Of a stretch of DNA of 64,000 nt, positions 5,851 through 54,415 are shown in pieces; position 1 is the stretch's first letter; each line of letters begins with the position of its first letter. The translations under genes were made by a program, and so were the position numbers. The stretch is taken from sequence record PQ182779.1; one strand, 5' to 3'. The notes beneath the pieces are model-generated. The model made no database searches. It saw nothing but the letters and a program-made list of their open reading frames with translations, and had not been told where the DNA came from.

Positions 5851-5876
5851 CACTGGTGAGGGTTTCCTCACCAGTG
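5851..5876 (+). terminator. intrinsic terminator-like hairpin H1
   Basis: CACTGGTGAGG-GTTT-CCTCACCAGTG, then GACTTTTTATTT. Confidence 0.75.
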
Positions 5877-5908
5877 GACTTTTTATTTCTTAATGAGGAA
5901 TCACGAGA

Positions 5909-6082
5909 ATGAGCGATAATAAGGTATCTTACCATATCGACGCTGGCGGTGAGGTTGAACTCTCTCCACGTGCCTACCAGGAAACCGTGTTACAGTATCG
6001 CTTCGGTTATACCGAAGCTCAACTGGCCAATATGTCTGACAATCAAATCGCACAACGGTATGCAGAACTAACTGAAGGATAA
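5909..6082 (+). CDS. small hypothetical protein, 57 aa (not in ORF track)
   Basis: GAGG RBS at about 5895. Reads MSDNKVSYHIDAGGEVELSPRAYQETVLQYRFGYTEAQLANMSDNQIAQRYAELTEG*, with the stop 3 nt before the next ATG. Confidence 0.7.
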   Translation: MSDNKVSYHIDAGGEVELSPRAYQETVLQYRFGYTEAQLANMSDNQIAQRYAELTEG

Positions 6083-6085
6083 TCT

Positions 6086-6448
6086 ATGGCTGACTTGATT
6101 AATCTTGGCGAACGTCGTATGGAACGTATGACAACAACAGAACAGATAGAACACGTCTACCGACTCATCGATAAAATAGATCATTTCGTGATCAAGTCGG
6201 CCAGTGAAATGTTAGAACTGCTCAAATACAAACATCAACAGCAGGACAGTACCGCCGCTATCTGTCTCCATCTGATCTACGTCGGTTTCTTTACGGGAGA
6301 CGAAGGTGCGGACTATACCGGCGATGAATTACTGAAGTTGGTGGAGGATAACCTGACACGGTATAAAGGATGTCTTTACCGCAAGCTCAAACAGCAGTAC
6401 CCGTGTAACCCCGAAGTAGACAAACTGAATCCGCTAAAAAGCGTATAA
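6086..6448 (+). CDS. hypothetical protein, 120 aa
   Basis: AAGGA RBS. Coupled to the upstream small ORF and ends at the convergent hairpin. Confidence 0.7.
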   Translation: MADLINLGERRMERMTTTEQIEHVYRLIDKIDHFVIKSASEMLELLKYKHQQQDSTAAICLHLIYVGFFTGDEGADYTGDELLKLVEDNLTRYKGCLYRKLKQQYPCNPEVDKLNPLKSV

Positions 6449-6458
6449 GCTAAAAAGC

Positions 6459-6490
6459 CTCCCATGGATAGCTTTCGCTATCCATGGGAG
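6459..6490. terminator. hairpin H2 between convergent genes
   Basis: CTCCCATGGATAGC-TTTC-GCTATCCATGGGAG (14-bp stem), with TATG at 6497. Confidence 0.75.
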
Positions 6491-6530
6491 CGGCACTATG
6501 CCGTTATTGAGTGAAAAGGTTATGGATGAA

Positions 6531-8708: not shown

Positions 8709-8822
8709 TTGTAGTATATTATGAAACATTACTGCATTCGTGTTTATTGAATCATATGACAATTTCTTGACAGCGCTGTCGAGAGAGTTTCTAAAATAAC
8801 GTTATTAAAGGAACGTAATAAA

Positions 8823-11142: not shown

Positions 11143-11172
11143 CCCAGTCTCCCGCTTCGGCGGGAGACTGGG
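11143..11172 (+). terminator. hairpin H3 after capsid gene
   Basis: CCCAGTCTCCCGC-TTCG-GCGGGAGACTGGG with a UUCG loop. Followed by TCTATG, with no U-tract. Confidence 0.75.
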
Positions 11173-11197
11173 TCTATGTCCGTCAAATCGAAAAATG

Positions 11198-11223
11198 TTC
11201 AGACCTATATTACCTTATTGAGA
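11198..11223 (+). promoter_or_regulatory. putative early (virion-RNAP) promoter
   Basis: TTCAGACC-TATATTAC-CTTATTGAGA. TATATTAC is the reported phiKZ early consensus. Near-identical copy at 48469. Confidence 0.65.
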
Positions 11224-12324: not shown

Positions 12325-13941
12325 GTGGCTGATATAGCATTGTTTAATGACATTGTTGAACCGTTACCCAAGTTCAACAAAGACATTGCCGGTGGATTTG
12401 CTGTTAAGGATTTAGAGGATGCCGAACAGTATATCGATCGAATTGCGCATTGTGCGGCACAGGACTTTCCTCCCGATGTCGAATACCTGGGGATGCGTAG
12501 ACTGACGCCCTACGAAGAGTCTCAGGCGATCATTAAAGGGAATGAAAAGGCGGAACGTCGCGGGGAAGTTGATATTGCGCAAACTGACGCGGTGATGTCG
12601 GAAATGAAACTGCGTTTTCAGAAAATCCACATCCTACCACGGAACATCAATATTCCGTTTGTCAGGGAAGCAGGGACGTTATGGTTAGGCGGCTCACGTG
12701 CAACAATTCATCCGATCCTGGCGGATTTGGTTTTCTCGGTAGCCGGGAATGATTTGTTCACGATCCTCTTCCGAGCGAAGTTCACTTTGAAACGGAGTAT
12801 TTACAGTGTCCTACAAGACGGCGAATCAATCCCGTCCTTTGTAGTCTACGGAAATATCTATCAAGGTAAAACAGGGAACGAAGGGAAGAAATCGTCGTTT
12901 AACTCGACGCTGGGTCATTACCTGTTCTGTAAGTATGGCGTAACGGAAACCTTTAAACGTTTCTACGACATTGACGTCGTGATCGAAGAGAACCGTCACA
13001 GCTTACGTGAGGATTACCCAGAGCAAGACTACGTGATCTTTACCACGCAAGGGTTACCGCCGCCAGAACGCCGCCGCGCAATCAGCGATTGGAAACCCAC
13101 GAACCTGGCGTTGATCATTCCGCGTGAAGCGGTGTTGAACAACATAGGTGTTCAGTTACTGGCGACGCATTTCTTCTACGTCGTCGATCGTTACCCGCAA
13201 CGCTTCAATTTGCAGTACATCGATATGCCAGACACGTGGCGCATTATCATGGGTTTTATTCTGCATCAGGGGAACGAGAACGAAGGGAAACTGCTCAACA
13301 AGGTTGATCTCCATCTTAAGTCGCTCGACTCTTACGTCGATGGCGAGACGAAGAAAAATCTTCGTCAAGAAGGGATCATGGCCAATGACCTTTACGAGTT
13401 GTTTATCCATATCCTTGAAACAATCCAGGATCGACTGAAAGACGATAATTCGGGTAACATGTGGGGGAAATATCTCCTGGTGAAACGGTATGCGTTATCG
13501 GGCATCACGGAGAGTATCTTTAACTTTACCTGGCAGTTAGAAAAAGAACAGAAAACGCTGCGACTGAAGCGGTTAACATGGAAGCTGTCTAGTTTCCTAA
13601 CCACTAACGCATTCCTCGGTATCCAACGGGGACACGGCGAACTTAACTCTGTTCAGTACCCGGGCGATAACATGATTTTCAAACACACGTGTATCGCTAT
13701 CCGTCAAGTCAATGCTGTTATCGGTAAAGGTAAGACAAAAAGTTTCAAACCTAACGAAACGGCTTACCACCTGCATTCAAGTATCATGGAATGTGGTTCA
13801 GTGTGCAACTTTGCGAAAGGTATCCCCGACGGCCGTGGACGTCTAAACGTTTACGCCCACACCGACGACGCTGGGAAATTTATTCGTAATCCGAAAAACA
13901 TTGAACTCCTCGATATGGTACAGCGGGAAATTACCGAATAA
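12325..13941 (+). CDS. non-virion RNA polymerase beta subunit, N-terminal part (phiKZ gp123-type)
   Basis: HSSIMECGSVCNFAKGIPDGRGRLNVY resembles beta region D (HxSHxGRICPxETPEG...GL). Located just after the capsid gene and downstream of an early-type promoter. Confidence 0.75.
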   Translation: MADIALFNDIVEPLPKFNKDIAGGFAVKDLEDAEQYIDRIAHCAAQDFPPDVEYLGMRRLTPYEESQAIIKGNEKAERRGEVDIAQTDAVMSEMKLRFQKIHILPRNINIPFVREAGTLWLGGSRATIHPILADLVFSVAGNDLFTILFRAKFTLKRSIYSVLQDGESIPSFVVYGNIYQGKTGNEGKKSSFNSTLGHYLFCKYGVTETFKRFYDIDVVIEENRHSLREDYPEQDYVIFTTQGLPPPERRRAISDWKPTNLALIIPREAVLNNIGVQLLATHFFYVVDRYPQRFNLQYIDMPDTWRIIMGFILHQGNENEGKLLNKVDLHLKSLDSYVDGETKKNLRQEGIMANDLYELFIHILETIQDRLKDDNSGNMWGKYLLVKRYALSGITESIFNFTWQLEKEQKTLRLKRLTWKLSSFLTTNAFLGIQRGHGELNSVQYPGDNMIFKHTCIAIRQVNAVIGKGKTKSFKPNETAYHLHSSIMECGSVCNFAKGIPDGRGRLNVYAHTDDAGKFIRNPKNIELLDMVQREITE

Positions 13942-16213: not shown

Positions 16214-16277
16214 CCCTCCCACAGAGAGCGAAAGCTCTCTGTGGGAGGGAAGAGGGTTTATGCCCTCTTTTTTTTTT
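16214..16277. terminator. tandem hairpin H4 between convergent genes
   Basis: CCCTCCCACAGAGAGC-GAAA-GCTCTCTGTGGGAGGG, then AAGAGGG-TTTATG-CCCTCTT and a T run. Confidence 0.8.
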
Positions 16278-19074
16278 ATTCAGGTCCGTTTGTTTCTTCT
16301 GGTGTAGCGAAAGGATCTGCTTCCTCTTCAGTGGAAGTTTCTCCTCCTCCTTCTAACTCGTCCGTGGCGAAAGGATCTTCCTCGGTATCTTCGAAGGAAC
16401 CGAAGTCGCCACCACCAAAGGCGTCACCGCCACCGGAATCGTTGTTGTCCCAATCATTTCCGGAACTGTCATTGTCCCAACCGCCGCCAGCGTCATTATT
16501 GGCTGTAAGGATCTCATGCTGTTTCGGGTTCTCTACTTCCATCCGTTTCAGTAACGCGTCACGGGTGGCCGCCAATGCCGAGCTGAAATCGCCAAAGTTA
16601 TGCAGCATATTGACAATGTCGGTAGTAAAGACTTTGATCATATCCAGCGATGGATCTTCTTCCGTGACCGGCGACAGGATCTTCACAAAACCCATATCGA
16701 AGCCTTGACTCTGTAACCAGTCGCGTTTCAGGTACGCTGTCATGTGTGCCCTGAGCATATCGATCTTAGATTGATCTTCCGGTGCAAATGCCCCCAGAAG
16801 TTCGCTTGAGATGTAACAGTCGACAATGTCGTCAATCATATCTTTCACTTTGTCGAATTCTTCTTTTTGTTTCTCAATCCGGTTATTTTCCGGACGAGGT
16901 AACTCAAGGTAGAATGCGTCAAAATAAGCGTCGATCGCATCGAGGTATTTTAAATCTTCCGGGATTTGACTTTCTTTATCGAGACGATATTCTTCAGGGA
17001 GCTTATCATTGTTCTCGGCAAAGATCTTCTGAATACGCCCGATTAAAACACCATCCGAGTTCACGTATGATCTGACGAGCTTCTTCCCATGCTTACAGGT
17101 GTCGTCTTGAATCATCATGATACGTTTAGCGTAGAGCTGGTTAGACGTCCAACGGGTGATAGCAAAGTCTGCCTCGTCAGTCATGTCCACCATCGCCGGT
17201 GTAACAAAGAGACCCATATACTGTTGACGACGAAGATCATTGGTAAAGTTCTCGTCAATGATCTGTTTCTGAGATTGGTACTCATTAATGTCCACAGTGG
17301 TATTCGGGATACGTGGGTTACCCTGTACCTCAATCGTCGTCCCCATCATTCTGAGTACGCGGAACATTTCCGCCGAAGAACTGACATCCGTAGGAGTAAC
17401 GGTGCTGGTCATTCGTTGATACTCATCAATCAAGATCGCATAAGCTTTCTCGGGGTCAGGTGTACGCGGGTCGATGTTCATCGTTACTTTGGTTCTCCCT
17501 ACCGCATTCTTCACGCCCGCCATAAAGTTAGCGAAGGTGGTCATGGCTCGCAGTGCAGAGACCTGTTTGATGTCATCAAGCAACGATTTCCCCATCCCGT
17601 TACTGTCGTAGTCGTAAGCGAAATACGCGACTTGTTCAGCAGGGACAAAGACGAGGTTAGTACGTTGGTTCGCAAACTGACGAAACATCATGATACGCAT
17701 GATATCTTCGTTCCAAGCCATCTTCACGTTACGACCGATCAAACCGTTTTTAATACGGTTGAGGATGTTTTCCTCTAAGACCTGGTTATAGACGCGAATA
17801 CGTTCTTCCGCCGCCATTTTGTCGGTATCCATACAGATACCGTTCTGCGCAATGCGGGTTTGCTGGATTAAACTGGAGGTCATGTCCAGTTGTTGCTGAG
17901 CACCCATTGTACCGATCTGACCATTAGTGGCTGCCTGGTTCAGTTCATCGGTTAAGTTGATCGGGTTACCCAGCTCATCCAGGACAATGACGTAACCGAT
18001 GTGGTTTCGCTCATCGCCTTTCGGGTAACACGGAATCACCGATTCTGAGGGGCACTTAATGACCAGCGGATGACCGATACTGCTTCTGCTGGCTTCTGAG
18101 GCCGCAGGAATAACTTTAACAGGGTTAACGCTAGTTTGACCAGACCGTGAGTTGTAAAGCGTTCTCGCGACCGTCGAGACGTTGTTATGACCGTTTCTTG
18201 ACCGGTACGCCTCCATCCCTGCTCCGCTACGTCCGTAGCGGTATTTGTTTCTCAAACGCTCTTCATTAATCTGGTTACGGATATGGCTCAAACCCATAAT
18301 TCCGAGGTTATCGGTGATGGTGGCACTGTCATTAATACGAACCTGATTAGGGTTCATAACCGGCATGGAGAACATGCTTTCTAAAGACGGTGCCGGCGCA
18401 CTACTGCGAATGTTCTTTTTACCTTTATTCGCATCACGGATTTCCTGATCGGTAATTCCTGGGTCACCTAAGATGCCGACAGATTTTAAGGTTCCGTCAA
18501 CGAAATGCGTTTTCAGTTTTTCGTTGAAACTTTCCGTGGCCAGATAACTACCGACTTCGCGAAGGTTGATGATGTCATCGATAACAGCTTCCGGGACAAT
18601 TACACCGACCCACGCACCTGTTTCAAATAACGCCTCTCCGATGATCTCAGGGAGTTTATCGCGTAAGGGGTAGTATGACTCAAAATGATCCCGTATGACC
18701 TCTGTGACTTGATTGAGGACGCTTGGTGGGATCTCTGACGCATCAGTTTTAAATCCTAACTCCCCTTGGGTCATATCGACCGGAGAAAGGGTAGTGGAAA
18801 CAATCATCTGTTTAATCAATTTAATGTCGGGCGCTAAAGAGATGATTGTTTCTGCGTCCAGGTTCTTTCTGGCGCGACGACTGACGAGACGGTCGAAAAT
18901 CGTTGGGTCGGGAACATCGACACCATTTCCAGGTGTAGTCGTACGATGTACCGCATCCTGAACCAGTTTCGACATAATTGCCGTAGCCGAAGGGGTGCGT
19001 TGGAGCCAATCCTGTGGACGACTGGAAACTTTGATCCCGGTAGGATTCACCGTTTTCTTTTCGTAACTATTCAT
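16276..19074 (-). CDS. portal protein (phiKZ gp129-type), 932 aa
   Basis: GKSLLDDIKQVSALRAMTTFANFMAGVKNAVGRTKVTMNIDPRTPDPEK matches the T4-type portal segment (G-x-S-x-L...A...R-x-x-x-x-I-D). Size and divergent position fit. Confidence 0.75.
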   Translation of the reverse strand: MNSYEKKTVNPTGIKVSSRPQDWLQRTPSATAIMSKLVQDAVHRTTTPGNGVDVPDPTIFDRLVSRRARKNLDAETIISLAPDIKLIKQMIVSTTLSPVDMTQGELGFKTDASEIPPSVLNQVTEVIRDHFESYYPLRDKLPEIIGEALFETGAWVGVIVPEAVIDDIINLREVGSYLATESFNEKLKTHFVDGTLKSVGILGDPGITDQEIRDANKGKKNIRSSAPAPSLESMFSMPVMNPNQVRINDSATITDNLGIMGLSHIRNQINEERLRNKYRYGRSGAGMEAYRSRNGHNNVSTVARTLYNSRSGQTSVNPVKVIPAASEASRSSIGHPLVIKCPSESVIPCYPKGDERNHIGYVIVLDELGNPINLTDELNQAATNGQIGTMGAQQQLDMTSSLIQQTRIAQNGICMDTDKMAAEERIRVYNQVLEENILNRIKNGLIGRNVKMAWNEDIMRIMMFRQFANQRTNLVFVPAEQVAYFAYDYDSNGMGKSLLDDIKQVSALRAMTTFANFMAGVKNAVGRTKVTMNIDPRTPDPEKAYAILIDEYQRMTSTVTPTDVSSSAEMFRVLRMMGTTIEVQGNPRIPNTTVDINEYQSQKQIIDENFTNDLRRQQYMGLFVTPAMVDMTDEADFAITRWTSNQLYAKRIMMIQDDTCKHGKKLVRSYVNSDGVLIGRIQKIFAENNDKLPEEYRLDKESQIPEDLKYLDAIDAYFDAFYLELPRPENNRIEKQKEEFDKVKDMIDDIVDCYISSELLGAFAPEDQSKIDMLRAHMTAYLKRDWLQSQGFDMGFVKILSPVTEEDPSLDMIKVFTTDIVNMLHNFGDFSSALAATRDALLKRMEVENPKQHEILTANNDAGGGWDNDSSGNDWDNNDSGGGDAFGGGDFGSFEDTEEDPFATDELEGGGETSTEEEADPFATPEETNGPE

Positions 19075-21599: not shown

Positions 21600-21637
21600 A
21601 AAAGGCGGGTCACCGCCTTTTTTGTTATGACATAACA
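21600..21637 (+). terminator. hairpin H5 plus adjacent palindrome
   Basis: AAAAGGCGG-GTCA-CCGCCTTTT, then TGTTATG-A-CATAACA. Confidence 0.65.
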
Positions 21638-36858: not shown

Positions 36859-36884
36859 TTACCCCAACTAAAGGAGTTGCAATC

Positions 36885-37839: not shown

Positions 37840-37843
37840 CTAA

Positions 37844-38083: not shown

Positions 38084-38182
38084 TTATCCTCTCCGTCAAT
38101 TTCAAGTTTTAAACCGCTCGGTTATCTTTTGAACAAACCATAACACACATGTGACTATTAACACGTATACAGGAAACTGAAC

Positions 38183-38437
38183 ATGAAAGTAACTCTGAAC
38201 GAAACTACCGCTGAAAAGATCAATGCACTGACCACCGATACCGTCTCTGCCGAAACGGTCATTGACATGGCAGTCGATTCGCTGACCTGGGTTAAGTCTT
38301 CACTTGACCAGGGTAAAAGCGTCATGGCTGCAAAAGCCTCTGACGACGGTTGGGTAGAAGAAGAGTTCTACCCGGCAACCGAAGTCCTGAACGAACTCTA
38401 TCGCCCGTCCACCGACGAAGCGCCTGACGCAGAGTAA
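38183..38437 (+). CDS. small acidic hypothetical protein, possible ribbon-helix-helix fold, 84 aa
   Basis: AGGA RBS and host-optimised codons. MKVTLNETTAEKINAL...SAETVIDMAV follows a strand-helix-helix pattern. Confidence 0.6.
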   Translation: MKVTLNETTAEKINALTTDTVSAETVIDMAVDSLTWVKSSLDQGKSVMAAKASDDGWVEEEFYPATEVLNELYRPSTDEAPDAE

Positions 38438-38453
38438 TTCTGCGTATTAGGAA

Positions 38454-38497
38454 CATAAGCTCTCTCCTCCGCAGAAGCGGAGGAGAGAGTCTCTATG
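38454..38497. terminator. hairpin H11 with CATA...TATG flanks, convergent junction
   Basis: CATAAG-CTCTCTCCTCCGC-AGAA-GCGGAGGAGAGAG-TCTC-TATG. Confidence 0.75.
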
Positions 38498-38507
38498 CTT
38501 CTTTTTT

Positions 38508-39107
38508 TTATTTTGCTGCCAATAACGCCTGAATCTTGATACGTAACTCAGCGTTCTCTTTTTGCAGCGCCAAGTTCTGCGCGTAGGTCGACGTACGATT
38601 GGTGATAGCTGACAGTCTCGCTGCTTCGATCGCGTCCGCCTCTTCCGTACTGATCGCTTCAATCGTGGCCAGTTGATCTACGTAGATCTCAGGAACAACG
38701 CCGATCGTGTCAGAGATCAGGTTGCCCATCTGTTCTTTCAAGAACGAGTAATCGAGGTCTAAACGCATCGGCCCCAAAGACGCAGAGAGGATCACCTGTC
38801 CCCAGTTCGACATCCCGATCCCCGGGAAAGTTTCAATGTAGGTATCGGGAACCGTAATGACGCTACCAGAGGACGAATACAGTACACACATCGCCGCGCC
38901 AGCAGACAGGTCTGCGTTATAGTCAGACTCCGTGAGGCCCTTAGGAGAATAGTAGACGTTAAAGATATCAATCCCTTCCGCTACCATCTCGGTAAAGAAA
39001 CGAATAGCGGTACATTGATAAATTAACGACTGACTGGCGGTCCACGGTTGTATTAATGACCATTTCCCTTTCAACCCTAAGGCAGGGGTGTTACGTGTCT
39101 TAGCCAT
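38508..39107 (-). CDS. virion structural protein, 199 aa
   Basis: AAGGA RBS and coupling to the upstream 433-aa gene. Contains TPALGLKGKWSLIQPW and a C-terminal coiled coil. Confidence 0.55.
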   Translation of the reverse strand: MAKTRNTPALGLKGKWSLIQPWTASQSLIYQCTAIRFFTEMVAEGIDIFNVYYSPKGLTESDYNADLSAGAAMCVLYSSSGSVITVPDTYIETFPGIGMSNWGQVILSASLGPMRLDLDYSFLKEQMGNLISDTIGVVPEIYVDQLATIEAISTEEADAIEAARLSAITNRTSTYAQNLALQKENAELRIKIQALLAAK

Positions 39108-39112
39108 TCGTT

Positions 39113-40414
39113 TTAATCCTTACTGAAACCGTTTTTCACCGGAACCAGATACTGAACGGTATTGACCGTCATGGTGATGTAAACCACCCCGTTGCGCGTA
39201 GCACGAGTGTACCCTGTCGGCAGGATAGAAGTAGCCGTTGCTGTTTCTGCAATCTTCAGAAGCGCAATCAAGCTGATAATGAAGTTTCGGGTCGCTTCTG
39301 GAATCTTACCGAATTCAGAGCTGGTTGGTGCGATTGCTGCATAGCGCGGCCAGAGTTCGGAGAAGACGTAGGAAACGTTATAGTTCCTTACGTGACCACA
39401 AACCAAGAGCTGAAGGTTCTGGTACGTGTTAAATGCAATTTCCCCAGCGTCAATGACATGCTGTTGTTCATAGTCCGCCATGTACTTATCGGTATAAGTC
39501 AGGAAATCCTTATACGGTAACACCGGGGAATAGAGCGCGGTAGTATCCAGCTGATTAGGGAGAGAGATTCTGTCCCAAACCGGCACCACGTAATATTCAG
39601 TCGGTGTAAAGAGATCTGGTAAGACAATCTCCCACGTGTCAGTACCTGCCGTGCTGTTCCCTAGGATATGTTCACGAATCGCGTTTTTGATGTAATCAAG
39701 GTTCTTACCGGCAGACCCGTAGATCACGACGTTGATCGGAATTTGCAACGTGACTTCGTCGTTATCTTTTGCCACCCACGTAAAGTAGCCGGTCCAGATA
39801 TCCGTCTGCGGGTTCTGGCCGATAGCGTTCGTGATGCGTGCGGTGTTACTCACCGGGGTAATAGCTTTGATCGCCGCCACCGCAGCGTCAGAATCACCAA
39901 CCAACAGATCAATGTCATCAAACGGCATTACGACGCTAAGTTCATAAAGCGGATATTCCACCAGGAAATTATCGATCGCGTACCAGACAAACAGTTCGTT
40001 CTCTTCCCCAGAGTTACTAAAGGACATTTGGAGACTAGAAGGAAAATTATATGATCCATTGTTGACAATTGCCCCAACTGATTTTACAGTGAGGTAATCC
40101 GAAAACTGCGCATTCAGGTTCTGAAGTAGTGCAGCGGTGTCTGTGGTGATCAGACCGTTAATGCTTCGCTGATAGAGCCACTGTGAGACTTCCAGGATCT
40201 GCGTGTAGTAAGTCAACCCTAGATTACTTTTGGTACCGTCGCGGGTGACAGACAGCGTCTTTAAAATGACATCGGTGTAATCGGCAACAGAATATGTCCC
40301 TACGTCTGTGCTGTAGGTTTCACCGTGGGTGGTCAGTTCACCTACTTTTGCAGTCTGTCCCACTGCGTTATTGATAAAATTTTTAATAGTTACAAAACTA
40401 TACACATTCAACAT
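39113..40414 (-). CDS. virion structural protein (phiKZ gp157-type), 433 aa
   Basis: GGAG RBS. Contains GELTTHGETYS and PDLFTPTEYYVVPVWD motifs. Divergent from the RNase H operon. Confidence 0.55.
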   Translation of the reverse strand: MLNVYSFVTIKNFINNAVGQTAKVGELTTHGETYSTDVGTYSVADYTDVILKTLSVTRDGTKSNLGLTYYTQILEVSQWLYQRSINGLITTDTAALLQNLNAQFSDYLTVKSVGAIVNNGSYNFPSSLQMSFSNSGEENELFVWYAIDNFLVEYPLYELSVVMPFDDIDLLVGDSDAAVAAIKAITPVSNTARITNAIGQNPQTDIWTGYFTWVAKDNDEVTLQIPINVVIYGSAGKNLDYIKNAIREHILGNSTAGTDTWEIVLPDLFTPTEYYVVPVWDRISLPNQLDTTALYSPVLPYKDFLTYTDKYMADYEQQHVIDAGEIAFNTYQNLQLLVCGHVRNYNVSYVFSELWPRYAAIAPTSSEFGKIPEATRNFIISLIALLKIAETATATSILPTGYTRATRNGVVYITMTVNTVQYLVPVKNGFSKD

Positions 40415-40473
40415 TGTTTCTACTCCATAATTATTATTAAACAGGAAAAGAACCTGTCAGCGGAGGTACCGCC

Positions 40474-40899
40474 GTGAATTACTTTTTCTTGCGTTTTTTA
40501 CCGTACTTGTATTATTTCATACGGGAGCAATACCGTTTGGATAATACCAGAGAACCACCACCGAAAAGGAAGCGTTACTTCTATCGTACGATAATAACCA
40601 TTTTAATTTTCACTCTTGGTTTGTCGTCAACGGTAGGTTATGTCAAATACCGTGAATTATATCGTAATTATAATGCCGCGTTAAAACGTCTTTCCGATGC
40701 CAGTAATCAGCCGGTATCAGGAATCAGTCGCGATCGTTATGAAGCCGATATTCATACGTTGACCATGGAAAAATTTGGCTGGGAAAATGACGCCCGTCTG
40801 GAACTCTCTGAACTCCAGAGAATTTGCACCAAGACGCCCAGTGCGTGCGACGCCCAAAGCCATCACATCATTGAGGAATTTCAACGCCGTCACCCTTGA
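40474..40899 (+). CDS. single-TM membrane protein, 141 aa
   Basis: GTG start with GGAGG RBS. A basic stretch PPPKRKRYFYR, then the TM TIITILIFTLGLSSTVGYV. Confidence 0.65.
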   Translation: MNYFFLRFLPYLYYFIREQYRLDNTREPPPKRKRYFYRTIITILIFTLGLSSTVGYVKYRELYRNYNAALKRLSDASNQPVSGISRDRYEADIHTLTMEKFGWENDARLELSELQRICTKTPSACDAQSHHIIEEFQRRHP

Positions 40900-40955
40900 T
40901 TTCTTACGCGACGCTTTATTCTTCTGAACATACTTTGAAACAGGAACTTCTGAAC

Positions 40956-42554
40956 ATGAAGATTGAGCAACCGTGGGAAGGTGAATTCCCAGAACCGGGC
41001 AGTTTTAATCTTGTTTTATTCTGCGACGGCGGAAGTAATACCCAAACGTTACTTTCTGGCTGGGGTATTCACGGATATTCGTACCCGGTTGCGGACAAGA
41101 AAGAAGCGAAGATTAAAAAGGCTAAGGGTGCGTTTACTAACATCGGTTATGTCGACGGTAGACAACACCGGTGTAAAGATGTCGTCACTAAGGCAGATGA
41201 AGAGACGGGCTTCACTGGGCAGGTAGATAAAAACTATCTTATCTTACACGCCGATGAAAATAAAACGGTGAAGCCTGTCAACCCCATCAGCTTTATTGAT
41301 GCATACGGTGGTCAGTACAAAACCAGTAATAACTTTACTGAGTTAATGGGGATGTTAAACAGTCTCACAATTGTCAAAGAAAAGAGCCCAAAAGAGTCTG
41401 TTATCTTTGCGGACTCGAAATATGTTTTAGAAGGGTTACTTTTCTATCGTGTTAATTGGGAAAGAAACGGTTGGTTAACTGCTGATCGTCGACCTGTCCA
41501 AAACAAAGATCTTTGGCAATTGCTCTGTTCTCTCTTCGACAGTATTGTTGAGGAAGGGAAAACCAGAATGTTATTTGGGTATATCCCAGGTCACGCTGGT
41601 TATACAGGGAATGAACGTGCTGATTACAACGCCAACCGCGGAATGATTCTGGAACGCGATGAACCTGGTAAAACCGTTTATCTCATTTCAGACCGTAAAG
41701 GATACGTACAAAACACCAAAACCAGTAATCGCTTACTGGAACAACGTTGGTGGTATGCGTTAACTGACCGGACACATTACAAAGTTGACTATGACGATCG
41801 CTACGTTTATTTCTTCGGGAACCACGGTAACGACACCGAAGTCGACATGATCGGTAAGGCCACTGCCACTGCTAAAGTAGCCATCCTCTTCGCTAAGGAA
41901 AAAGAACCTGTCCTGGAATTACTCGGAGAGTTTCTGAAGAGCCGGTACTACGACGGCACTCAGATCATGACGCTGGGTCATCTTGAAAATATCCTTAACG
42001 CAGATCGATACGTCAGTCTGATACAGGACAAACGTTCTGTCTTATGGGACGACGCCGAGAAGAGCACTATCCGGTCTCCGGATAAAGTTGCGCTTATTGA
42101 GGAGCTGAGACCGACCTTTTTAGGTTTCCGTCTGTTGACGCGGTTTGAGACACTTCTGACCATGTTAGGATACGGGTTTACAGGCAAGGGAAAAACGACG
42201 ATCACGGATATCACTTCATACTGTGTGAAGACGACCCAAGAAGGGAAAAAGAAACCTGTCACAAAACCCACTGAGGCCATGGACCCGCCGAACAAGGCAA
42301 TTTCTGTTACAGCCAATTACCAACTGGCTGACGGGACAACAGGGAAAGCCACAATCAAATTAAAAATAGGACAAGATATCCCGTTAAGGAATACGGTCAA
42401 CGCGTTGGGTTCTGAAGACCTCAGAATACGCGTCATCACATGGCCAGATGGCACGCGTGCTTTCCGTTACGCCACGTTAATGGAAGTGGACGGTGACACG
42501 CTGTTTACTGCGTCGCTCAATTCTAACCTTTTTGAGATCACGGGTAAACTATGA
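40956..42554 (+). CDS. rnhA: ribonuclease HI with C-terminal extension (phiKZ gp155-type)
   Basis: LFCDGG, TSNNFTELMG, IFADSKYV and GHAGYTGNERADYNA give the complete RNase HI D/E/D/H/D set. The start may be TTG 40896 or ATG 40956. Confidence 0.9.
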   Translation: MKIEQPWEGEFPEPGSFNLVLFCDGGSNTQTLLSGWGIHGYSYPVADKKEAKIKKAKGAFTNIGYVDGRQHRCKDVVTKADEETGFTGQVDKNYLILHADENKTVKPVNPISFIDAYGGQYKTSNNFTELMGMLNSLTIVKEKSPKESVIFADSKYVLEGLLFYRVNWERNGWLTADRRPVQNKDLWQLLCSLFDSIVEEGKTRMLFGYIPGHAGYTGNERADYNANRGMILERDEPGKTVYLISDRKGYVQNTKTSNRLLEQRWWYALTDRTHYKVDYDDRYVYFFGNHGNDTEVDMIGKATATAKVAILFAKEKEPVLELLGEFLKSRYYDGTQIMTLGHLENILNADRYVSLIQDKRSVLWDDAEKSTIRSPDKVALIEELRPTFLGFRLLTRFETLLTMLGYGFTGKGKTTITDITSYCVKTTQEGKKKPVTKPTEAMDPPNKAISVTANYQLADGTTGKATIKLKIGQDIPLRNTVNALGSEDLRIRVITWPDGTRAFRYATLMEVDGDTLFTASLNSNLFEITGKL

Positions 42555-42928
42555 TCAAAATACTTTTAGCGGTCTTCGGACCTAAACTCTTTACGACGAA
42601 AGGTAGGCGTGTTTTAATATTGGGTTCTTTTTACACGCTACTCTCTGGTCGTTCGGGTGGATGTCAACGTTTAGCTTCGAGTATGAATCGTCGCTTAAAC
42701 TTGACAACGGATTCCAAAGGATTATTGCTAGGTACGATTCTCCCTGAGATTCTTTGGGATGAAAAACAGTGCGAAGCGATTAGAACCTTACCGCACGAAA
42801 AGGTCGCTAATTACTTCGAAGAGATGATCCCCCACTGGTTAAAAGAAGGCGTGGAGGATGGCGAGTTCACACTTCGTCAGGAACTGAAAAATATTGTCAA
42901 CATGCATTCGTTGTCGGCAGTGTCATAA
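42551..42928 (+). CDS. hypothetical protein, 125 aa
   Basis: ATGA overlap with the rnhA stop. Ends at hairpin H12. Confidence 0.65.
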   Translation: MIKILLAVFGPKLFTTKGRRVLILGSFYTLLSGRSGGCQRLASSMNRRLNLTTDSKGLLLGTILPEILWDEKQCEAIRTLPHEKVANYFEEMIPHWLKEGVEDGEFTLRQELKNIVNMHSLSAVS

Positions 42929-42931
42929 AGT

Positions 42932-42969
42932 GAGAATGGGAGAGGGTTGACCTCTCCCATTCTCTTATG
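42932..42969. terminator. hairpin H12, convergent junction
   Basis: GAGAATGGGAGAGG-GTTGA-CCTCTCCCATTCTC, then TTATG. Confidence 0.75.
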
Positions 42970-42970
42970 T

Positions 42971-43843
42971 TTATTTTGCTAAAGCAATCAGTTTCTCAGC
43001 AGTTTCATCCATTGCCGTCCGTTGGGATTCAACGTAGGTGTAAGTCGCTGCGTAAAGCTCCGCCATTTTCGCCATCTGGAAAACGACCTCGGTCAGATCG
43101 TTAATGGTCTTAGCATTAAGACGATAGGGTAAGTTACTGTCCTTGATTTGTTTAGACAGAGTTTCCAACATCTCTGCACAGCGATCAACGGTGCCTTTCA
43201 CGAGGTCCAAATTACCCTTATGAAGTGCGGTAGAAATCTCTTGGGTCTTAGCGTAAACCTTAACCGTATCACCGTTACGTTCGGTACATTCACCGTAAGC
43301 GCGAAGGTTAGTTTTCACATTCCCTTTCAGATAAGCGGTCAACGACTGAATGTGAGAATCAATGTCAATTTGACTGATACGATTCACTGTCCCTACGGTA
43401 GTGAATTTTTCTGGGTCAGTAATGGCGACTGCCAGGAATTTTTCAAACGGATTCAGGTAATCGTCGTAAAAGTCCACGGAAAATTTCACCGGGAGTCTCC
43501 ATGAATCTAGCAGTTCCAGCCAGGTACCAGATAAACCCGGAACCACTTGTACACGCTGACCGGTGATATCCGCGTACAGTATAGAATCCAGTGCTTTTTC
43601 CAGTTTGATCTGTTGACTGGTTTTAGGTTTCGCGCTGTCTTTAAAATCGCTCAGTTTATCAACTGGACTGCTAAAGCGCCCCGCAATTTTATTCAGGAAC
43701 CCAGCAAAGCGATCGACGACACCCATCGCTGCCCGTTGGATAGAGAGCGCTTCGTTACTGGGCGTGGAGTGGACAGGGATTTCTTTGGTCATTGCAATAA
43801 TGGCATTTTTTTCAGCGTTCAAATATTCCATTGAGAATGGCAT
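42971..43843 (-). CDS. virion (head) protein (phiKZ gp153-type), 290 aa
   Basis: Helical protein with an SNE/A candidate protease site near the N-terminus. Divergent from uvsX. Confidence 0.5.
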   Translation of the reverse strand: MPFSMEYLNAEKNAIIAMTKEIPVHSTPSNEALSIQRAAMGVVDRFAGFLNKIAGRFSSPVDKLSDFKDSAKPKTSQQIKLEKALDSILYADITGQRVQVVPGLSGTWLELLDSWRLPVKFSVDFYDDYLNPFEKFLAVAITDPEKFTTVGTVNRISQIDIDSHIQSLTAYLKGNVKTNLRAYGECTERNGDTVKVYAKTQEISTALHKGNLDLVKGTVDRCAEMLETLSKQIKDSNLPYRLNAKTINDLTEVVFQMAKMAELYAATYTYVESQRTAMDETAEKLIALAK

Positions 43844-43949
43844 GATCTATACCTTATGTAGTCAGTAATCTAAAGAGCGTTAACATAAAATTAAATACCT
43901 TCCTTAATTGTAATGAAGACAATTCATAAAACAGAACCAAGGATTATCA

Positions 43950-45365
43950 ATGAGCGGATTTTCACTGAGCCCGGCGGGTGTCATGAGCGAAGATAAGAAA
44001 GCCGATGCCTCTACCCCTAAACTGAACACCAACTGTTTGTTTGATCATTTCTCTGGTCGTTACGTCGAAGGCGAAGCCGGGGAAATGTATTTAAACGGTG
44101 GGGTGGCGAATATCAACGCCGTCGTAGGCGAGAACAACCAGTTTAAATCGACCCTGGCTGATTTCATGATGTTACAGCCTCAGGAACTGTACTACGATGC
44201 CGTCAACAGCTTTTTCTACGAGACCGAAGGCTCTAAAGATATTGAAGGTTTAGGGTACCGTGCTGCCAGAATGCCGCGTATCACCGAACACGGCCTCGAA
44301 GAGAATGAAAAGTTTCTCTTCACTAACATGTTAAAAATGTCCGGGAACGACTATTGGGACGTCCGTAAAAAATACGGCGAAATGAAAGTCGATAAGAAAA
44401 CGAAAGTCCCTATGTTGACCACTCCGTTCCCTAACCATGACGGACAGCTGATCAAGATGTATCCGCCAACCATGGAAGAAATCGATTCCTGGTCAATGAT
44501 GTCTTTTGACGCCATTGAAGAAAAATTTGGCGATAACGAAATCGGCTCGAAAGACAACAACATGATCTTCATGAACGACGGGCGTTACAAAACCCAGATC
44601 ATGATGCAGATGCCGGGGCTCAATGGCCGCCATTCGTTCTATTCCATGTTAACTGCCCATATCGGGGCGAAAGCGAATATGGACCCGAATGCGCCTCCGC
44701 ACAAAATCATGGCCGACCTCCAGTCCGGTAAGACGATCAAGAACGCCACCGAAAAATTCACCTTTATTCCGAATAACATGTGGTTTGTTCACGGTCGTTC
44801 TCCGCTAACTGACGGCTCGCGTCTTCCGCTTTACGGTCGCGGTGAAATGGGATCGAAGGAAGACAAAGACCTCGTTAAAGTGCGTTGTATGAACCTGCGC
44901 GGTAAATATGGTCAATCCGGTGCACCGTTTGAGCTGGTCTTCTCTCAGGCAGAAGGCTTACTCGTTCACTTAACTCAGCTACACTACCTGCGCGAAACGA
45001 ATAAGTATTACGGGATGGGTAGTAATACAACTAACCTCTCTCTGGCGATCTACCCGGAAGTATCTTTCACGCGTAACGCCGTCCGTGACAAAATCGACGA
45101 CGACTATAAACTGCGCCGTGCGTTAGAGCTGACCTCTGGTCTGTGTCAGATTCGTAACTTCATGTGGAAACTGGAAGGTTATGCGATGACCCCGCCAGAG
45201 ATCTTCGAAAAGATCAAAGAGCAAGGTTACGATTGGGACGAGCTGTTAGGGGAAACTCGCGGCCATTGGCAGTTCAAGGAAATCAAAGAAGAGAAACATT
45301 TCCTGAGCAGCTATGACCTGATCAGAATTGCAATGGGTAAATACAAACCTTACTGGAAACAGTAA
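43950..45365 (+). CDS. uvsX: UvsX/RecA-like recombinase (phiKZ gp152-type)
   Basis: INAVVGENNQFKST (Walker A variant), FFYETEGS, EEIDSWS (Walker B), LTAHIG and NLRGKYGQSG. Confidence 0.8.
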   Translation: MSGFSLSPAGVMSEDKKADASTPKLNTNCLFDHFSGRYVEGEAGEMYLNGGVANINAVVGENNQFKSTLADFMMLQPQELYYDAVNSFFYETEGSKDIEGLGYRAARMPRITEHGLEENEKFLFTNMLKMSGNDYWDVRKKYGEMKVDKKTKVPMLTTPFPNHDGQLIKMYPPTMEEIDSWSMMSFDAIEEKFGDNEIGSKDNNMIFMNDGRYKTQIMMQMPGLNGRHSFYSMLTAHIGAKANMDPNAPPHKIMADLQSGKTIKNATEKFTFIPNNMWFVHGRSPLTDGSRLPLYGRGEMGSKEDKDLVKVRCMNLRGKYGQSGAPFELVFSQAEGLLVHLTQLHYLRETNKYYGMGSNTTNLSLAIYPEVSFTRNAVRDKIDDDYKLRRALELTSGLCQIRNFMWKLEGYAMTPPEIFEKIKEQGYDWDELLGETRGHWQFKEIKEEKHFLSSYDLIRIAMGKYKPYWKQ

Positions 45366-47901: not shown

Positions 47902-47933
47902 AGACAGAGAGGGATTCCCCTCTCTGTCTTATG
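47902..47933. terminator. hairpin H13, convergent junction
   Basis: AGACAGAGAGGG-ATTC-CCCTCTCTGTCT, immediately followed by TATG. Confidence 0.75.
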
Positions 47934-48468: not shown

Positions 48469-48494
48469 TTCAAGACTATATCACCTTATTGAGA
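48469..48494 (+). promoter_or_regulatory. putative early promoter
   Basis: TTCAAGAC-TATATCAC-CTTATTGAGA, near-identical to 11198-11223. Confidence 0.65.
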
Positions 48495-49870: not shown

Positions 49871-49907
49871 AAAGAAGAGTGGGGTCTTTACCCCACTCTT
49901 CTTTATG
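49871..49907 (+). terminator. hairpin H14
   Basis: AAAGAAGAGTGGGG-TCTTTA-CCCCACTCTTCTTT, running into TATG. Confidence 0.75.
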
Positions 49908-51295: not shown

Positions 51296-51299
51296 AACA

Positions 51300-51327
51300 G
51301 TAGAGAGGGCTTAATTGCCCTCTCTAC
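51300..51327 (+). terminator. hairpin H15
   Basis: GTAGAGAGGGC-TTAATT-GCCCTCTCTAC. Confidence 0.7.
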
Positions 51328-51386
51328 TCTATTTACACAGCACCGTTTATTGATGTAGAAAATATCTTTTCGATAAGGATGATGAG

Positions 51387-52190
51387 ATGCCTGCTGTTAA
51401 AAACCAGCCCGTATATCTTTACAACGGCGTTAAACGCACTGTCCCGGAAATCGTGGAGATTACGGGTATGAAAAGAATCACGGTTTACCAGAGAATAAAG
51501 AGAGCGTTGGTAAAAACTCCCGGTATGAAGGATGTCGGACCCCTCTTCGTAAATTTAGTGGGGTACAAGAAAAGACTTTATCCTGTATTGAGTGAAGTCC
51601 TTACGTTAAGTGAGATTGTTGAACGGTACCGGTTAGATTACAGGAAAACACAATCTTCTTTATTCCGAGGAGATAGTGTTCTTACCGTATTGGAACGCCG
51701 AGCTAAAAAGAGTCGACCAGAAATTATACACCCGAAGACCCGCGCAAAATTGAGAGCAAGTTTCACAAGGATAAAGAACCGCAGCGGGAAATCGTTGACT
51801 CTTCCAGTTCATTGGACTTCGTACAGAAAGGCGTTTGACGAAATAGGTTATCCTAGAGAAGAAACTGATTTCTTGTGGATTGAAAAAACAGATGAGCCCC
51901 TCAATGCAATGAGTTGTTACTGGGCACCCGCTGAAAGACGCGCTGACTATACGCGGTACACAACGCAACCAGGGAGAATAGCAACCATCAACGTTGAGTG
52001 GGAAGGTCAGCACGTCTCTGTTGCAGAACTCGCCAGAGAAAAGGCAATCCCTTATAGTACGTTACTTTATCGAGTGAAGAAAGGTTGGCCGAAAGAGGAC
52101 TGGTTTAATCCAATAGACGAGAGTTGTCAACGACTCGCTCCGCGGGTAGCAAAACGTACCGTGAGTACGTTAAAATTAGAAACAGTATAA
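51387..52190 (+). CDS. HNH-endonuclease-like protein with three HTH-type DNA-binding repeats; catalytic motif degenerate
   Basis: Repeats YNGVKRTVPEIVEITGMKRITVYQRI, LTLSEIVERYRLDY and WEGQHVSVAELAREKAIPYSTLLYRVKKGW. Central WTSYRKAFDEIGYP...SCYWAP. Confidence 0.6.
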   Translation: MPAVKNQPVYLYNGVKRTVPEIVEITGMKRITVYQRIKRALVKTPGMKDVGPLFVNLVGYKKRLYPVLSEVLTLSEIVERYRLDYRKTQSSLFRGDSVLTVLERRAKKSRPEIIHPKTRAKLRASFTRIKNRSGKSLTLPVHWTSYRKAFDEIGYPREETDFLWIEKTDEPLNAMSCYWAPAERRADYTRYTTQPGRIATINVEWEGQHVSVAELAREKAIPYSTLLYRVKKGWPKEDWFNPIDESCQRLAPRVAKRTVSTLKLETV

Positions 52191-52224
52191 AAAAGAGAGG
52201 GTGAAAACCCTCTCTTTTTTTTTT
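52191..52224. terminator. bidirectional hairpin H16
   Basis: AAAAGAGAGGGT-GAAA-ACCCTCTCTTTT with a long T run, between convergent genes. Confidence 0.8.
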
Positions 52225-52232
52225 GTTTACTT

Positions 52233-54377
52233 TTACAAGCCACGGTCAGTTTTACTGAGCGCAGAAAGTATTTGCCCGCCCATATTACCGCTGAAGATGG
52301 TATTGGCCAGGTTAGAGTACGAGAAGAATCTATCGAAACTGTTCACTACCCTGTTCCAGTTACGCTTGAAGCGCGGTAACATGTAAATCTGGTCATGGAG
52401 ACCCAGACTGGATAATACGTTAGTGTACATTTCAAACGACGAATCTTGCGGGAACAGCAGCCGGTTCCATGTAGTTGGGTCAAAGTTACGTAGACCAAAT
52501 GCCTCGTTAAGGTTCATGGCCGCCACTGACGAAAGGTCAGTGATCGTTAACCTGACATCAATCCCGAGGTATTCCCCGTTTTTCGTCCAAGGCATATTCG
52601 AGGTTGCACGAGTAATATCGATGGCCGTGATCATCCCCAAAGGAATCGAACAACGACCCTGGCAATAAAACTCACCGATGAAAGGTGCTGTATACGAACC
52701 AGTCCCCGTTGCCCTTGGTAACGCCCCCACTAACATTGTGATCAACGGAAGGATTTCGCACTGGAAGCGATTGAAGTTATCTCCCGCCCATGCTCGTAAC
52801 GGAATTGTTAGCGACATCTGGTTAAAACTCGCAGAAGAACTGTCGTAATGTTTAGGAATATCGACAAAGGCGTTCCCTGCAATAGCGCCAACACCCGAGA
52901 TATGAAGAGAATCCATAATCCCGCCCGCTATGTCTTTCACTGTGTTAACGATCTCTTGCATCCCTGGAATACCAAGGAAATTCCCTTCTGCCATACTGAA
53001 ACGCATACTGGCCGCTCTGGAAGAAGTGCTGTTGATTGTCGACTGGAGATCGGACTCGCGTACACTGTTTGAGAAAGATTCACTGGCCGACTCACGTCCA
53101 TCGATTCGAAGGGTTAGCCATTGAGAACCATCGCGCTGCGCCGCTTTAAAGGTCGCATAAGCACGACCAATGACCTCATCAGTGAAATAGTCTTTGACGC
53201 TTTCGTACGCTTGTTCAATAACACCTTTCTGCGCTTCATTAGTTCCGTTATCAGCCACGGGACTAATCGCATTACCGTTGGCATCGGTCGTTGTCGCTGT
53301 GGATTGCTGAGCGGTGTTAACCTCGGCATTGCTGGCTTCATTCCCCGCCGTAGCAGGTGATTCAGTGAGACGTCCGTCTGGGTCTTTCAGATAAGCGTTA
53401 AGGAACTCTTCAGTGGTCGCGTAAGTTTTCTTTTTGGCCTTGTTCAGTGATGCCGTTGCACCTCCGCCAGTCATCCACGCGTAGATACTTGACATCACGC
53501 CATTACCGTTACTCTGGTTTTGTGCGGCAATTTCATTAATTGCCTCATGCCACGCGTTAGCGTATGCCTGCGCCCGTGTCGCTGTCGCGTAGATATCGAT
53601 ACCGGTTAAACCGTCAGCACGGAAAAGTTCCGGTACCATCTGGTCATAAACCGACTTCTCTCTGGCGCCAATCTCAAACGCTGTTTTTGTTGCTTGTTCG
53701 ATAGACTCCACACCAGGGTCACCAGATTCCGACATCGGTGTGGTACCGTTTAAACTCGCACCTTCTGTAAGTTTAAGCCATGAATCCGTAGTAGGCTTTG
53801 CTGCGAGATCAAGGTTGGAGGCAATGTTGTTGGCAAAGTCGTTGACGTATTTCCAGTACAGGCCCATCGTCGGTTTAAGATAATAGAATTTCGTACTGAC
53901 CGTTCCGGTAAACCATTTGATGGCGGTGAACGTCATGATAAACGGAACAAGTCGAACAGAGAACGCCCAGCCGATCGCCCGGCCAATTAAATTCCCTACA
54001 CCGGATGCCCGTCCAGTACGAACCAAACGCGCATCGTCGGAGCTGTAGAAGTTACCGAAGAAACTCGCCAGACTGTTATAGTTCGGTACACCAAATCGCA
54101 TGTGGAGTAAAACTGAGTTGTCATCAATGTTTTCAGAATACCACGCACCTTGGCCCTCGCCGATTTCAACATAACGGTCTAAGACAGGGTCTGAAAAGAG
54201 ACAGGGTTGGGGTGGTGCATTCAATGCCCAGTTTCCGCCCAACGTAGTATCGGTGTATTTAAAATAGGCGCTGGAGTGGTTACGGTAATAAATGTCGTCA
54301 TCATCAACCGCATCGGCAGGAAGTAAGAATGCCTGACGCGTCCAGCTATCGTCAGTTACTGTATCTAATGTCGCCAT
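52233..54377 (-). CDS. baseplate/tail-tube initiator-like virion protein (phiKZ gp182-type), 714 aa
   Basis: Directly downstream of the tape-measure gene. YKYTDTTLGGNWALNAPPQ, HMRFGVPNYNSL and GRCSIPLGMITAIDITRA resemble tube-initiator folds. Confidence 0.6.
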   Translation of the reverse strand: MATLDTVTDDSWTRQAFLLPADAVDDDDIYYRNHSSAYFKYTDTTLGGNWALNAPPQPCLFSDPVLDRYVEIGEGQGAWYSENIDDNSVLLHMRFGVPNYNSLASFFGNFYSSDDARLVRTGRASGVGNLIGRAIGWAFSVRLVPFIMTFTAIKWFTGTVSTKFYYLKPTMGLYWKYVNDFANNIASNLDLAAKPTTDSWLKLTEGASLNGTTPMSESGDPGVESIEQATKTAFEIGAREKSVYDQMVPELFRADGLTGIDIYATATRAQAYANAWHEAINEIAAQNQSNGNGVMSSIYAWMTGGGATASLNKAKKKTYATTEEFLNAYLKDPDGRLTESPATAGNEASNAEVNTAQQSTATTTDANGNAISPVADNGTNEAQKGVIEQAYESVKDYFTDEVIGRAYATFKAAQRDGSQWLTLRIDGRESASESFSNSVRESDLQSTINSTSSRAASMRFSMAEGNFLGIPGMQEIVNTVKDIAGGIMDSLHISGVGAIAGNAFVDIPKHYDSSSASFNQMSLTIPLRAWAGDNFNRFQCEILPLITMLVGALPRATGTGSYTAPFIGEFYCQGRCSIPLGMITAIDITRATSNMPWTKNGEYLGIDVRLTITDLSSVAAMNLNEAFGLRNFDPTTWNRLLFPQDSSFEMYTNVLSSLGLHDQIYMLPRFKRNWNRVVNSFDRFFSYSNLANTIFSGNMGGQILSALSKTDRGL

Positions 54378-54397
54378 TTCTGTTCCTTTAAAAATAA

Positions 54398-54415
54398 GGG
54401 GAGATTTCTCTCCCC
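54398..54415 (-). terminator. short hairpin H17
   Basis: GGGGAGA-TTTC-TCTCCCC, with a T-rich run on the minus strand downstream. Confidence 0.45.

Follow-up and report, generated by a model that had tools for sequence, protein, structure and literature searches.

The question raised by this locus is what the tetramer TATG is doing directly behind the hairpins that end many of its genes, where a run of U would be expected. The locus is a stretch of 64,000 nucleotides (nt), hereafter the window, which is 100% identical to positions 124001-188000 of sequence record PQ182779.1, Klebsiella phage vB_kp_MJ359 (MJ359). The MJ359 genome (300,816 nt) has genes for a nuclear shell protein, a PhuZ tubulin and many split RNA polymerase beta-type subunits, and MJ359 is therefore a nucleus-forming phiKZ-like phage; its relatives FBKp24 and Centimanus are at ~74% identity. 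An initial annotation of the window proposed that TATG marks a terminator specific for the phage RNA polymerases, an RNA-processing site, or a terminator-promoter module that produces antisense RNA. We consider it probable that the MJ359 stems are transcription terminators of the phiKZ type, with a tail that is either a U-run or the short sequence Y-UAUG-Y (Y, pyrimidine), and that a subset extended to TATGAC represents late promoters located behind terminators. What survives of the initial annotation is the terminator-linked role, which fits the 3′ ends mapped in phiKZ, where a stem-loop precedes TTAT(G/T). Neither antisense production as a rule nor specificity for the phage polymerase is supported. 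The TATG copies are a mixed set of TATGAC late promoters, Y-TATG-Y terminator tails and a few incidental copies.

The excess of TATG after gene-end hairpins was confirmed to be beyond chance. The whole MJ359 genome was searched for hairpins of 7 or more pairs, with loops of 3-9 nt and a free energy (dG) of -10 kcal/mol or lower; this returned 181, 103 of them intergenic. There are 18 intergenic hairpins between window positions 5851 and 54415, where 17 strong stems had been annotated, and all 11 TATG copies that had been annotated beside stems were found in the sequence. On the + strand, TATG starts -1 to 9 nt past the stem in 11 of these 18 hairpins; 5000 mononucleotide shuffles of the same flanks gave a mean of 1.28 and a maximum of 6. 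For the genome as a whole, we scored the 124 flanks that are within 120 nt of a gene end and on the same strand as that gene (gene-end, or sense, flanks). Gene calls outside the window were based on open reading frames; inside the window, 50 stop positions agreed (56 annotated genes versus 54 calls). TATG was present in 30 of the 124 flanks, whereas the intergenic 4-mer frequency predicts 3.9 and flank shuffles, the genome-wide check that had been suggested for this element, predict 8.0 (z = 8.3; 0 of 2000 shuffles reached 30). Flanks of hairpins inside genes had TATG in 7 of 156 cases. The distance from the stem is also restricted, with a peak at 0-8 nt and no copies at 12-17 nt.

The sequence around the tetramer showed further regularities. 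TTAT was present in 53 of the 124 flanks, compared to 31.3 in shuffles (z = 4.9), and was the most significant 4-mer against the intergenic background. CTAT was also enriched; by flank shuffles of the same 124 flanks, TATC, TTTG and AATG were not. The base after TAT was G in 30 instances, T in 43, A in 15 and C in 7, in flanks whose G content is 13%. A pyrimidine preceded TATG in 21 of 21 scorable flanks and followed it in 22 of 23, giving the local consensus Y-TATG-Y. Flanks with a TATG other than TATGAC rarely had a T-run of four or more (10%, versus 48% of other flanks; p = 0.001), and their stems were stronger (median dG -22.8 versus -19.1; p = 0.0008). Both features are expected if the tetramer tail replaces the U-run. 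The annotated lack of any U-run holds for the + flanks of the hairpins at 6459, 11143, 47902 and 49871, which were not called by a scan for the intrinsic-terminator consensus; it does not hold for the hairpin at 42932, whose tail is T-rich (at least 5 T in 8 nt). The stems themselves had been described as sharing an AGAGGG/CCCTCT core, and this is a compositional preference rather than a repeated element, as near-identical copies are rare. Among the 5′ arms of 103 hairpins, GAGAGG occurs in 22, AGAGAG in 20 and AGAGGG in 16; of the 124 gene-end hairpin arms that were scored, 69% have a purine content of 70% or more.

We then classed every intergenic position by strand context and determined the density of TATG in each class, leaving out copies that overlap start codons. 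TATG was most dense after hairpins on the sense strand at convergent junctions (40.3 per kilobase, kb), followed by the sense strand after hairpins at tandem junctions (18.7 per kb), the antisense strand after hairpins (10.8 per kb), promoter-competent strands away from hairpins (3.5-5.0 per kb) and background (1.5-2.0 per kb). The odds ratio for convergent flanks against hairpin-free promoter strands was 11.9 (p = 2e-8). TATG is therefore attracted by a hairpin on the transcribed strand rather than by a gene downstream. The initial annotation had argued that a promoter for the downstream gene cannot explain the copies at convergent junctions, and the density maximum at precisely these junctions bears this out.

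These properties identify the MJ359 element as a rediscovery, in a distant Klebsiella relative, of a terminator class described for phiKZ in 2024. In phiKZ, 133 termination regions were mapped by ONT-cappable-seq, and 61 predicted intrinsic terminators have the common motif ...GGGRRGG-BY-TTAT-K-YYGT, in which a stem-loop is followed by TTAT (Putzeys et al. 2024, PMC10914365); motif A of phage 201phi2-1 is closely similar (PMC11512511). The elements of MJ359 resemble those of these two phages in having a GC-rich stem-loop at gene ends, followed directly by TTAT, then G or T, then pyrimidines, and in occurring on both strands at convergent junctions; all are in nucleus-forming jumbo phages with two multisubunit polymerases. 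When positions 1-150 kb of phiKZ were put through the same pipeline, TATG was found in 33 of 66 flanks (z = 12.5) at offsets of 0-2 nt, on both strands at the hairpins of convergent junctions, and the base after TAT was G in 35 cases, T in 20, A in 11 and C in 3. Public RNA runs compared with a phiKZ-like contig provided contig-level evidence for a 3′ end: a nanopore complementary DNA contig with poly(T) and an Illumina contig with an adapter end stop at the same base, 8 nt past the stem and 2 nt past the G of TATG. An apparent start at L013 2849, marked by the strand-switch primer, was rejected as a mispriming artefact, as the 3′ end of the primer matches the genome there.

There are also differences between the two phages. 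TATG is present in ~24% of flanks in MJ359 compared to 50% in phiKZ, its spacing from the stem is looser (0-8 versus 0-2 nt), the tail YYGT, scored as Y(1-3)GT after TATG, is weak (5 of 23 flanks versus 13 of 32), and antisense flanks are less enriched than in phiKZ. Purines make up, on average, a fraction of 0.71 of the 5′ arm in MJ359 and of 0.33 in phiKZ, so that the arrangement typical of phiKZ, a C-rich 5′ arm and a G-rich 3′ arm, was not found in MJ359; AGAGG occurs in 38 MJ359 arms and CCCTC in 28 phiKZ arms. Stem polarity is thus opposite, 5′-GAGAGG...CCUCUC-3′ in MJ359 versus 5′-CCCUCC...GGAGGG-3′ in phiKZ, and since arm polarity is the same on both DNA strands this represents a real difference between the lineages.

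TATG-type flanks were not characteristic of every phage scanned. Positions 1-100 kb of the Salmonella phage SPN3US had TATG-type hairpin flanks in 0 of 39 cases, its terminators having plain T-runs, and the negative controls AR9 and T4 had 2 of 42 and 0 of 6. SPN3US is also nucleus-forming and of equal G+C content, and TATG is the most strand-biased 4-mer on its promoter strands. The promoter and terminator uses of TATG can therefore be uncoupled. A correlation across phages between a TATG-reading polymerase and TATG terminators is broken by SPN3US, and a necessary link between the two is not supported on the same grounds.

We propose that each MJ359 element would act through a stable RNA hairpin at the gene end and the tail behind it. 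The tail is an ordinary U-rich run or, in roughly one case in four, a short A/U-rich stretch with the consensus Y-UAUG-Y in place of the U-run. At the time the hairpin forms, the final ~8 nt of the transcript would be in a weak, mostly A/U hybrid, and release would follow a few nt past the stem, as in ordinary intrinsic terminators. Strong stems would offset the short tail, and no polymerase-specific reading of TATG would be required. Such elements would share with canonical Rho-independent terminators a stable gene-end hairpin and release a few nt past the stem; approximately half of the MJ359 hairpins have ordinary T-runs, and related phage terminators work with the host polymerase. The TATG class departs from the canonical form in its stronger stems, its scarcity of T-runs, and the G-bearing tetramer that replaces part of the U-tract.

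A second use of the tetramer was apparent in copies extended to TATGAC. TATGAC is present in 10 of 31 TATG flanks, and nine of these 10 are at tandem junctions before structural genes. The genome has 18 intergenic copies, and most are followed, after 11-121 nt, by a gene in the same orientation. These genes are chiefly structural, among them those of the major head protein, tail sheath, tail fibres and spikes. The 40 nt upstream are free of hairpins in 10 of the 18 copies. One of the hairpin-free copies, at 8755-8760 on the + strand, is a candidate late promoter 68 nt before the major head protein gene, and provides evidence that TATG(AC) also acts independently of hairpins. The TATGAC sites at 21626 and 23106 are conserved in FBKp24 along with their surroundings. 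In MJ359, as in SPN3US, TATG is the most strand-biased intergenic 4-mer on promoter-competent strands. In phiKZ, TATG with its G as the start site is necessary for late transcription, while TATG alone is insufficient for promoter activity. The position expected of a late promoter, shortly upstream of a structural gene on the same strand, is that of TATGAC and not that of the 11 copies at convergent junctions. The TATGAC copies before structural genes are probably late promoters of the next gene. Those at 21626 and 23106 would be late promoters situated just behind a terminator, with the same motif hairpin-free at 8755; a terminator-promoter module, as annotated, is therefore retained in the sense direction for this subset and not as a general source of antisense RNA. 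The likeness to the phiKZ late promoter, which starts at the G of TATG, extends to the tetramer itself, the conserved TATGAC before structural genes and a homologue of the TATG-reading subunit encoded in the window. Most hairpin-adjacent MJ359 copies differ, however, as they depend on the hairpin and on the strand of the upstream gene and, above all at convergent junctions, have no gene to drive.

Comparison with FBKp24 revealed partial conservation. Stems stay paired between MJ359 and FBKp24 by compensatory changes, and of nine sense-flank TATG copies outside the TATGAC class that were compared, three are kept, the remainder being TTATC, TGTG or T-rich sequence in FBKp24. This and several other observations weigh against the terminator explanation in its simplest form. 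The G is lost at 6 of 11 orthologous TATG sites, which indicates that, except in the TATGAC class, the exact tetramer is under weak selection; a strict need for the G is not supported. At the same time, G follows UAU at 2.4-fold its flank frequency, an excess that a plain weak-hybrid model leaves unexplained. The enrichment of antisense flanks in MJ359 (p = 0.001), and its equality with the sense enrichment in phiKZ, fits bidirectional or palindromic elements and would not be expected from a model that acts on one strand only. The single phiKZ 3′ end was read from assembled contigs rather than raw reads and may reflect exonuclease trimming. The public sequencing runs that contain MJ359 are metagenomes in contig form, and we infer both that 3′ ends form at the MJ359 stems and how they do so.

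The alternative that survives best is that the non-virion polymerase reads the non-template TATG during elongation with the promoter pocket of its beta lobe, pauses as the hairpin forms, releases the RNA and may then restart at the G. The window encodes a homologue of phiKZ gp123, a beta-like polymerase subunit (12325-13941, + strand), that is 28% identical to the phiKZ protein. Nine of the 14 residues of its pocket are identical (S144, F151, K158, H331, S334, Q466) or conservatively replaced (H185Y, N186Q, Y406W), and the other five differ. The excess of G after UAU and the lack of U-runs in TATG flanks would also be in keeping with such reading. There is precedent for it. At the class II pause/termination signal of T7 RNA polymerase, the polymerase pauses or stops at a short specific sequence and needs no hairpin, and in sigma-70-dependent promoter-proximal pausing a promoter-like non-template element is re-read during elongation. 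These are precedents only. Sequence-specific recognition in MJ359 is argued against by three lines of evidence. The 3′ end in phiKZ, 2 nt past the G, is out of register with the promoter complex; SPN3US has the promoter bias for TATG and no TATG flanks; and terminators of 201phi2-1, several with the conserved motifs, stop the host polymerase in vivo at least as well as lambda T0 in a terminator-trap reporter, and the annotated specificity for phage polymerase is not supported. The pocket of phiKZ gp123 binds non-template TATG and needs an open strand, and the paper on the gp123 structure makes no mention of pausing. The frequent loss of the G in FBKp24 is a further difficulty, and we regard this explanation as unlikely. 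If it were true, a single four-base element would serve as a late start site and as a pause/release or stop-and-restart signal that replaces the U-tract, termination would be partly sequence-specific, and the specificity of late promoters would be tied to terminator architecture.

A second alternative is that all of the TATG copies after hairpins are working middle or late promoters, those at convergent junctions producing antisense RNA against the facing gene. The necessity of TATG with a G start for phiKZ late transcription, the enrichment of TATG on promoter strands in MJ359 and the promoter-like behavior of the TATGAC copies all point in this direction. However, TATG is densest where there is no gene to serve, the tetramer alone does not suffice for promoter activity, a promoter needs no tight spacing to a stem, and the convergent copies are poorly conserved in FBKp24. 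In addition, just four antisense RNAs with a start site have been reported in phiKZ, as opposed to dozens of such sites, and antisense firing is therefore not the rule. We consider it quite unlikely that all of the copies are promoters.

The preferred explanation, termination at the hairpin, must also be distinguished from RNA processing, in which 3′ ends would arise by endonuclease cleavage or by exonuclease trimming to the hairpin, with UAUG as part of a nuclease site. Mapped 3′ ends alone cannot separate termination from trimming, and strong hairpins without U-runs are typical exonuclease blocks. Against this, terminator-trap assays show true transcriptional stops for related elements, the stems fall short of the length that RNase III generally requires, and no nuclease consensus appears to fit Y-UAUG-Y after pyrimidine-rich 3′ arms; processing is very unlikely to account for the element. 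The passive appearance of TATG in T/A-rich tails (51% T and 20% A) is already refuted by the flank shuffles, the shuffles of the window hairpins, the flanks inside genes, the lack of enrichment of TATC and TTTG, and the absence of TATG flanks in SPN3US, which has equal G+C content and T-rich tails.

Several other candidates were considered and set aside. Hairpin promoters of the N4 kind, or melting assisted by a cruciform, do not agree with the hairpin-free TATGAC at 8755, nor with the well-studied phiKZ late promoter P119L, which by eye has no obvious upstream hairpin. Host sigma-70 promoters beside the hairpins showed no excess over shuffles in two of three stretches scanned and a modest excess in the third. 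Unannotated start codons (T followed by ATG) were rejected because a ribosome-binding site would not fit beside the hairpin and the density values already omit copies that overlap start codons. Stop codons of facing genes that create TTA-TG are real only at 33271 and at the mirror copy at 42924. A repeated mobile palindrome, similar to a repetitive extragenic palindrome (REP) or a miniature inverted-repeat transposable element (MITE), was rejected as the hairpins have only low-complexity purine cores in common and few near-identical pairs. The only clear duplicated pair in the MJ359 genome is outside the window, where terminator hairpins at genome positions 37113-37140 and 57500-57527, separated by 20 kb, match exactly over 28 nt, the loop included.

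If the terminator explanation is correct, it extends the terminator motif of phiKZ and 201phi2-1 from Pseudomonas phages to a distant nucleus-forming phage of Klebsiella, and makes that motif a lineage-specific one (it is absent in SPN3US) that is separable from TATGAC late promoters with the same core. It would permit better annotation of transcription units in Klebsiella jumbo phages, which are candidates for therapy, and could supply compact, strong terminators for synthetic biology. It also raises the question of why the late start-site tetramer, bound by the polymerase core itself, and the terminator tail are both TATG.

The individual hairpins of the window illustrate the two kinds of tail. 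The hairpin at 5851-5876 (element 5851-5890, + strand) is at the tandem junction gp160>gp161 and has a canonical T-rich tail without TATG. At 6459-6490 (element 6449-6500, both strands), between the convergent gp162 (+) and a DnaB-like helicase gene (-), the + flank has TATG at 6497-6500 and no T-run, and the minus flank has a canonical T-run. The hairpin at 11143-11172 (element 11143-11178, + strand) follows the major head protein gene and has TATG at 11175-11178, again without a T-run; an early-promoter-like motif, described below, is located downstream at 11206. Between the convergent gp168 (+) and gp169 (-) is a double hairpin (16214-16249 and 16250-16269) followed by a run of ten T (element 16214-16279). 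The loop of the second, small hairpin contains the TATG at 16259, and this copy is not conserved in FBKp24. The two hairpins with TATGAC are both on the + strand and both have T-runs: 21600-21621, with TATGAC at 21626-21631, is 32 nt before the virion gene gp171 and is conserved in FBKp24, and 23073-23099, with TATGAC at 23106-23111, is 67 nt before gp173 and has a flank identical to FBKp24 over all 20 nt compared.

At 25257-25284 (element 25257-25300, + strand) the tail, ATTTTATAGAC, has no TATG. This is the gp174>gp175 junction, where positions 25285-25300 read TATAGAC in MJ359 and TATGGA in FBKp24 (reverse strand, near 40641). The terminator tail is otherwise conserved here, and this gain or loss of TATG exemplifies turnover. 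The hairpin at 27144-27172 (element 27144-27185), between the convergent gp177 (+) and a spanin gene (-), has T/A-rich tails on both strands and no TATG. The hairpin at 33238-33265 (element 33238-33274) separates gp182 (+) from a convergent baseplate gene (-), and its TATG (33271-33274), which is not conserved in FBKp24, shares bases with the stop codon of the baseplate gene, as the annotation had cautioned. After an SbcC-like gene, the + strand hairpin at 36810-36831 (element 36804-36857) is flanked by a mirror CATA (36804-36807) and by TATG (36835-36838). The early-promoter-like motif at 36841 overlaps this TATG, and FBKp24 keeps the motif and not the TATG. At the convergent junction of gp188 (+) and gp189 (-), the hairpin at 38460-38489 (element 38454-38507) has TATG on the + strand at 38494-38497 and on the minus strand at 38457-38454, neither of which is conserved in FBKp24. 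Both copies are conserved at the hairpin 42932-42964 (element 42924-42969), between the convergent gp193 (+) and gp194 (-), one being at 42966-42969 on the + strand and the other, which overlaps the gp193 stop codon, on the minus strand at 42927-42924.

The remaining hairpins are toward the end of the window. TATG at 47930-47933 abuts the stem of the hairpin at 47902-47929 (element 47902-47933), between the convergent gp200 (+) and gp201 (-), and is TTATC in FBKp24. At the tandem junction gp203>gp204, the + strand hairpin at 49871-49904 (element 49871-49907) has TATG at 49904-49907; its flank is kept in FBKp24 and its stem has compensatory changes. The hairpin at 51299-51328 (element 51299-51340, + strand) has a CTATTT tail that is conserved in FBKp24 and no + strand TATG. 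A canonical bidirectional terminator with A and T runs is formed by the hairpin at 52189-52220 (element 52189-52232), between the convergent gp206 (+) and gp207 (-). Lastly, the hairpin at 54398-54415 (element 54384-54415) is on the minus strand between two minus-strand genes and has the minus-strand tail TTATTTTT.

Three of the window hairpins have CATA(A) upstream and (T)TATG downstream (36804-36838, 38454-38497 and 42924-42969). These flanks can pair and so add to the stem an A/U-rich helix with a closing C-G pair. The annotation had described mirror copies of CATA that are not stop codons; this is the case at 38454-38457, which is intergenic, and not at 42924-42927, which overlaps the TAA stop of the upstream gene, and the copy at 36804-36807 is a third. 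Palindromic CATA/TATG flanking is frequent in phiKZ, even at tandem junctions.

A different motif, tttNaaNNc-TATAT(C/T)AC-NN-TAtTGAA, was found to be strongly conserved in ~21 intergenic copies genome-wide, all on the + strand. In the window it is located at 11206-11222, 36841-36857 and 48477-48493, with a weaker copy at 33199 (four matches versus 0.13 expected). Copies are upstream of the nuclear shell gene, genes for non-virion polymerase subunits and many small genes. The TATAT(C/T)AC motif probably serves the virion polymerase as its early promoter.

Two further observations concern the phage and its gene content. Sequence nearly identical to window positions 36000-44000 (80-89% of sampled words) was found in metagenomes from fertilizer, food fermentation, gut, wastewater, plant and surface samples. 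As these metagenomes are unrelated, the phage lineage is either widespread or a common contaminant. At 51387-52190 of the window is an annotated HNH endonuclease of 267 amino acids, whose N-terminal 114 residues are 75% identical to an FBKp24 protein of 114 amino acids. The C-terminal 153 residues are missing from the FBKp24 gene, which indicates the gain or loss of a domain between these relatives.

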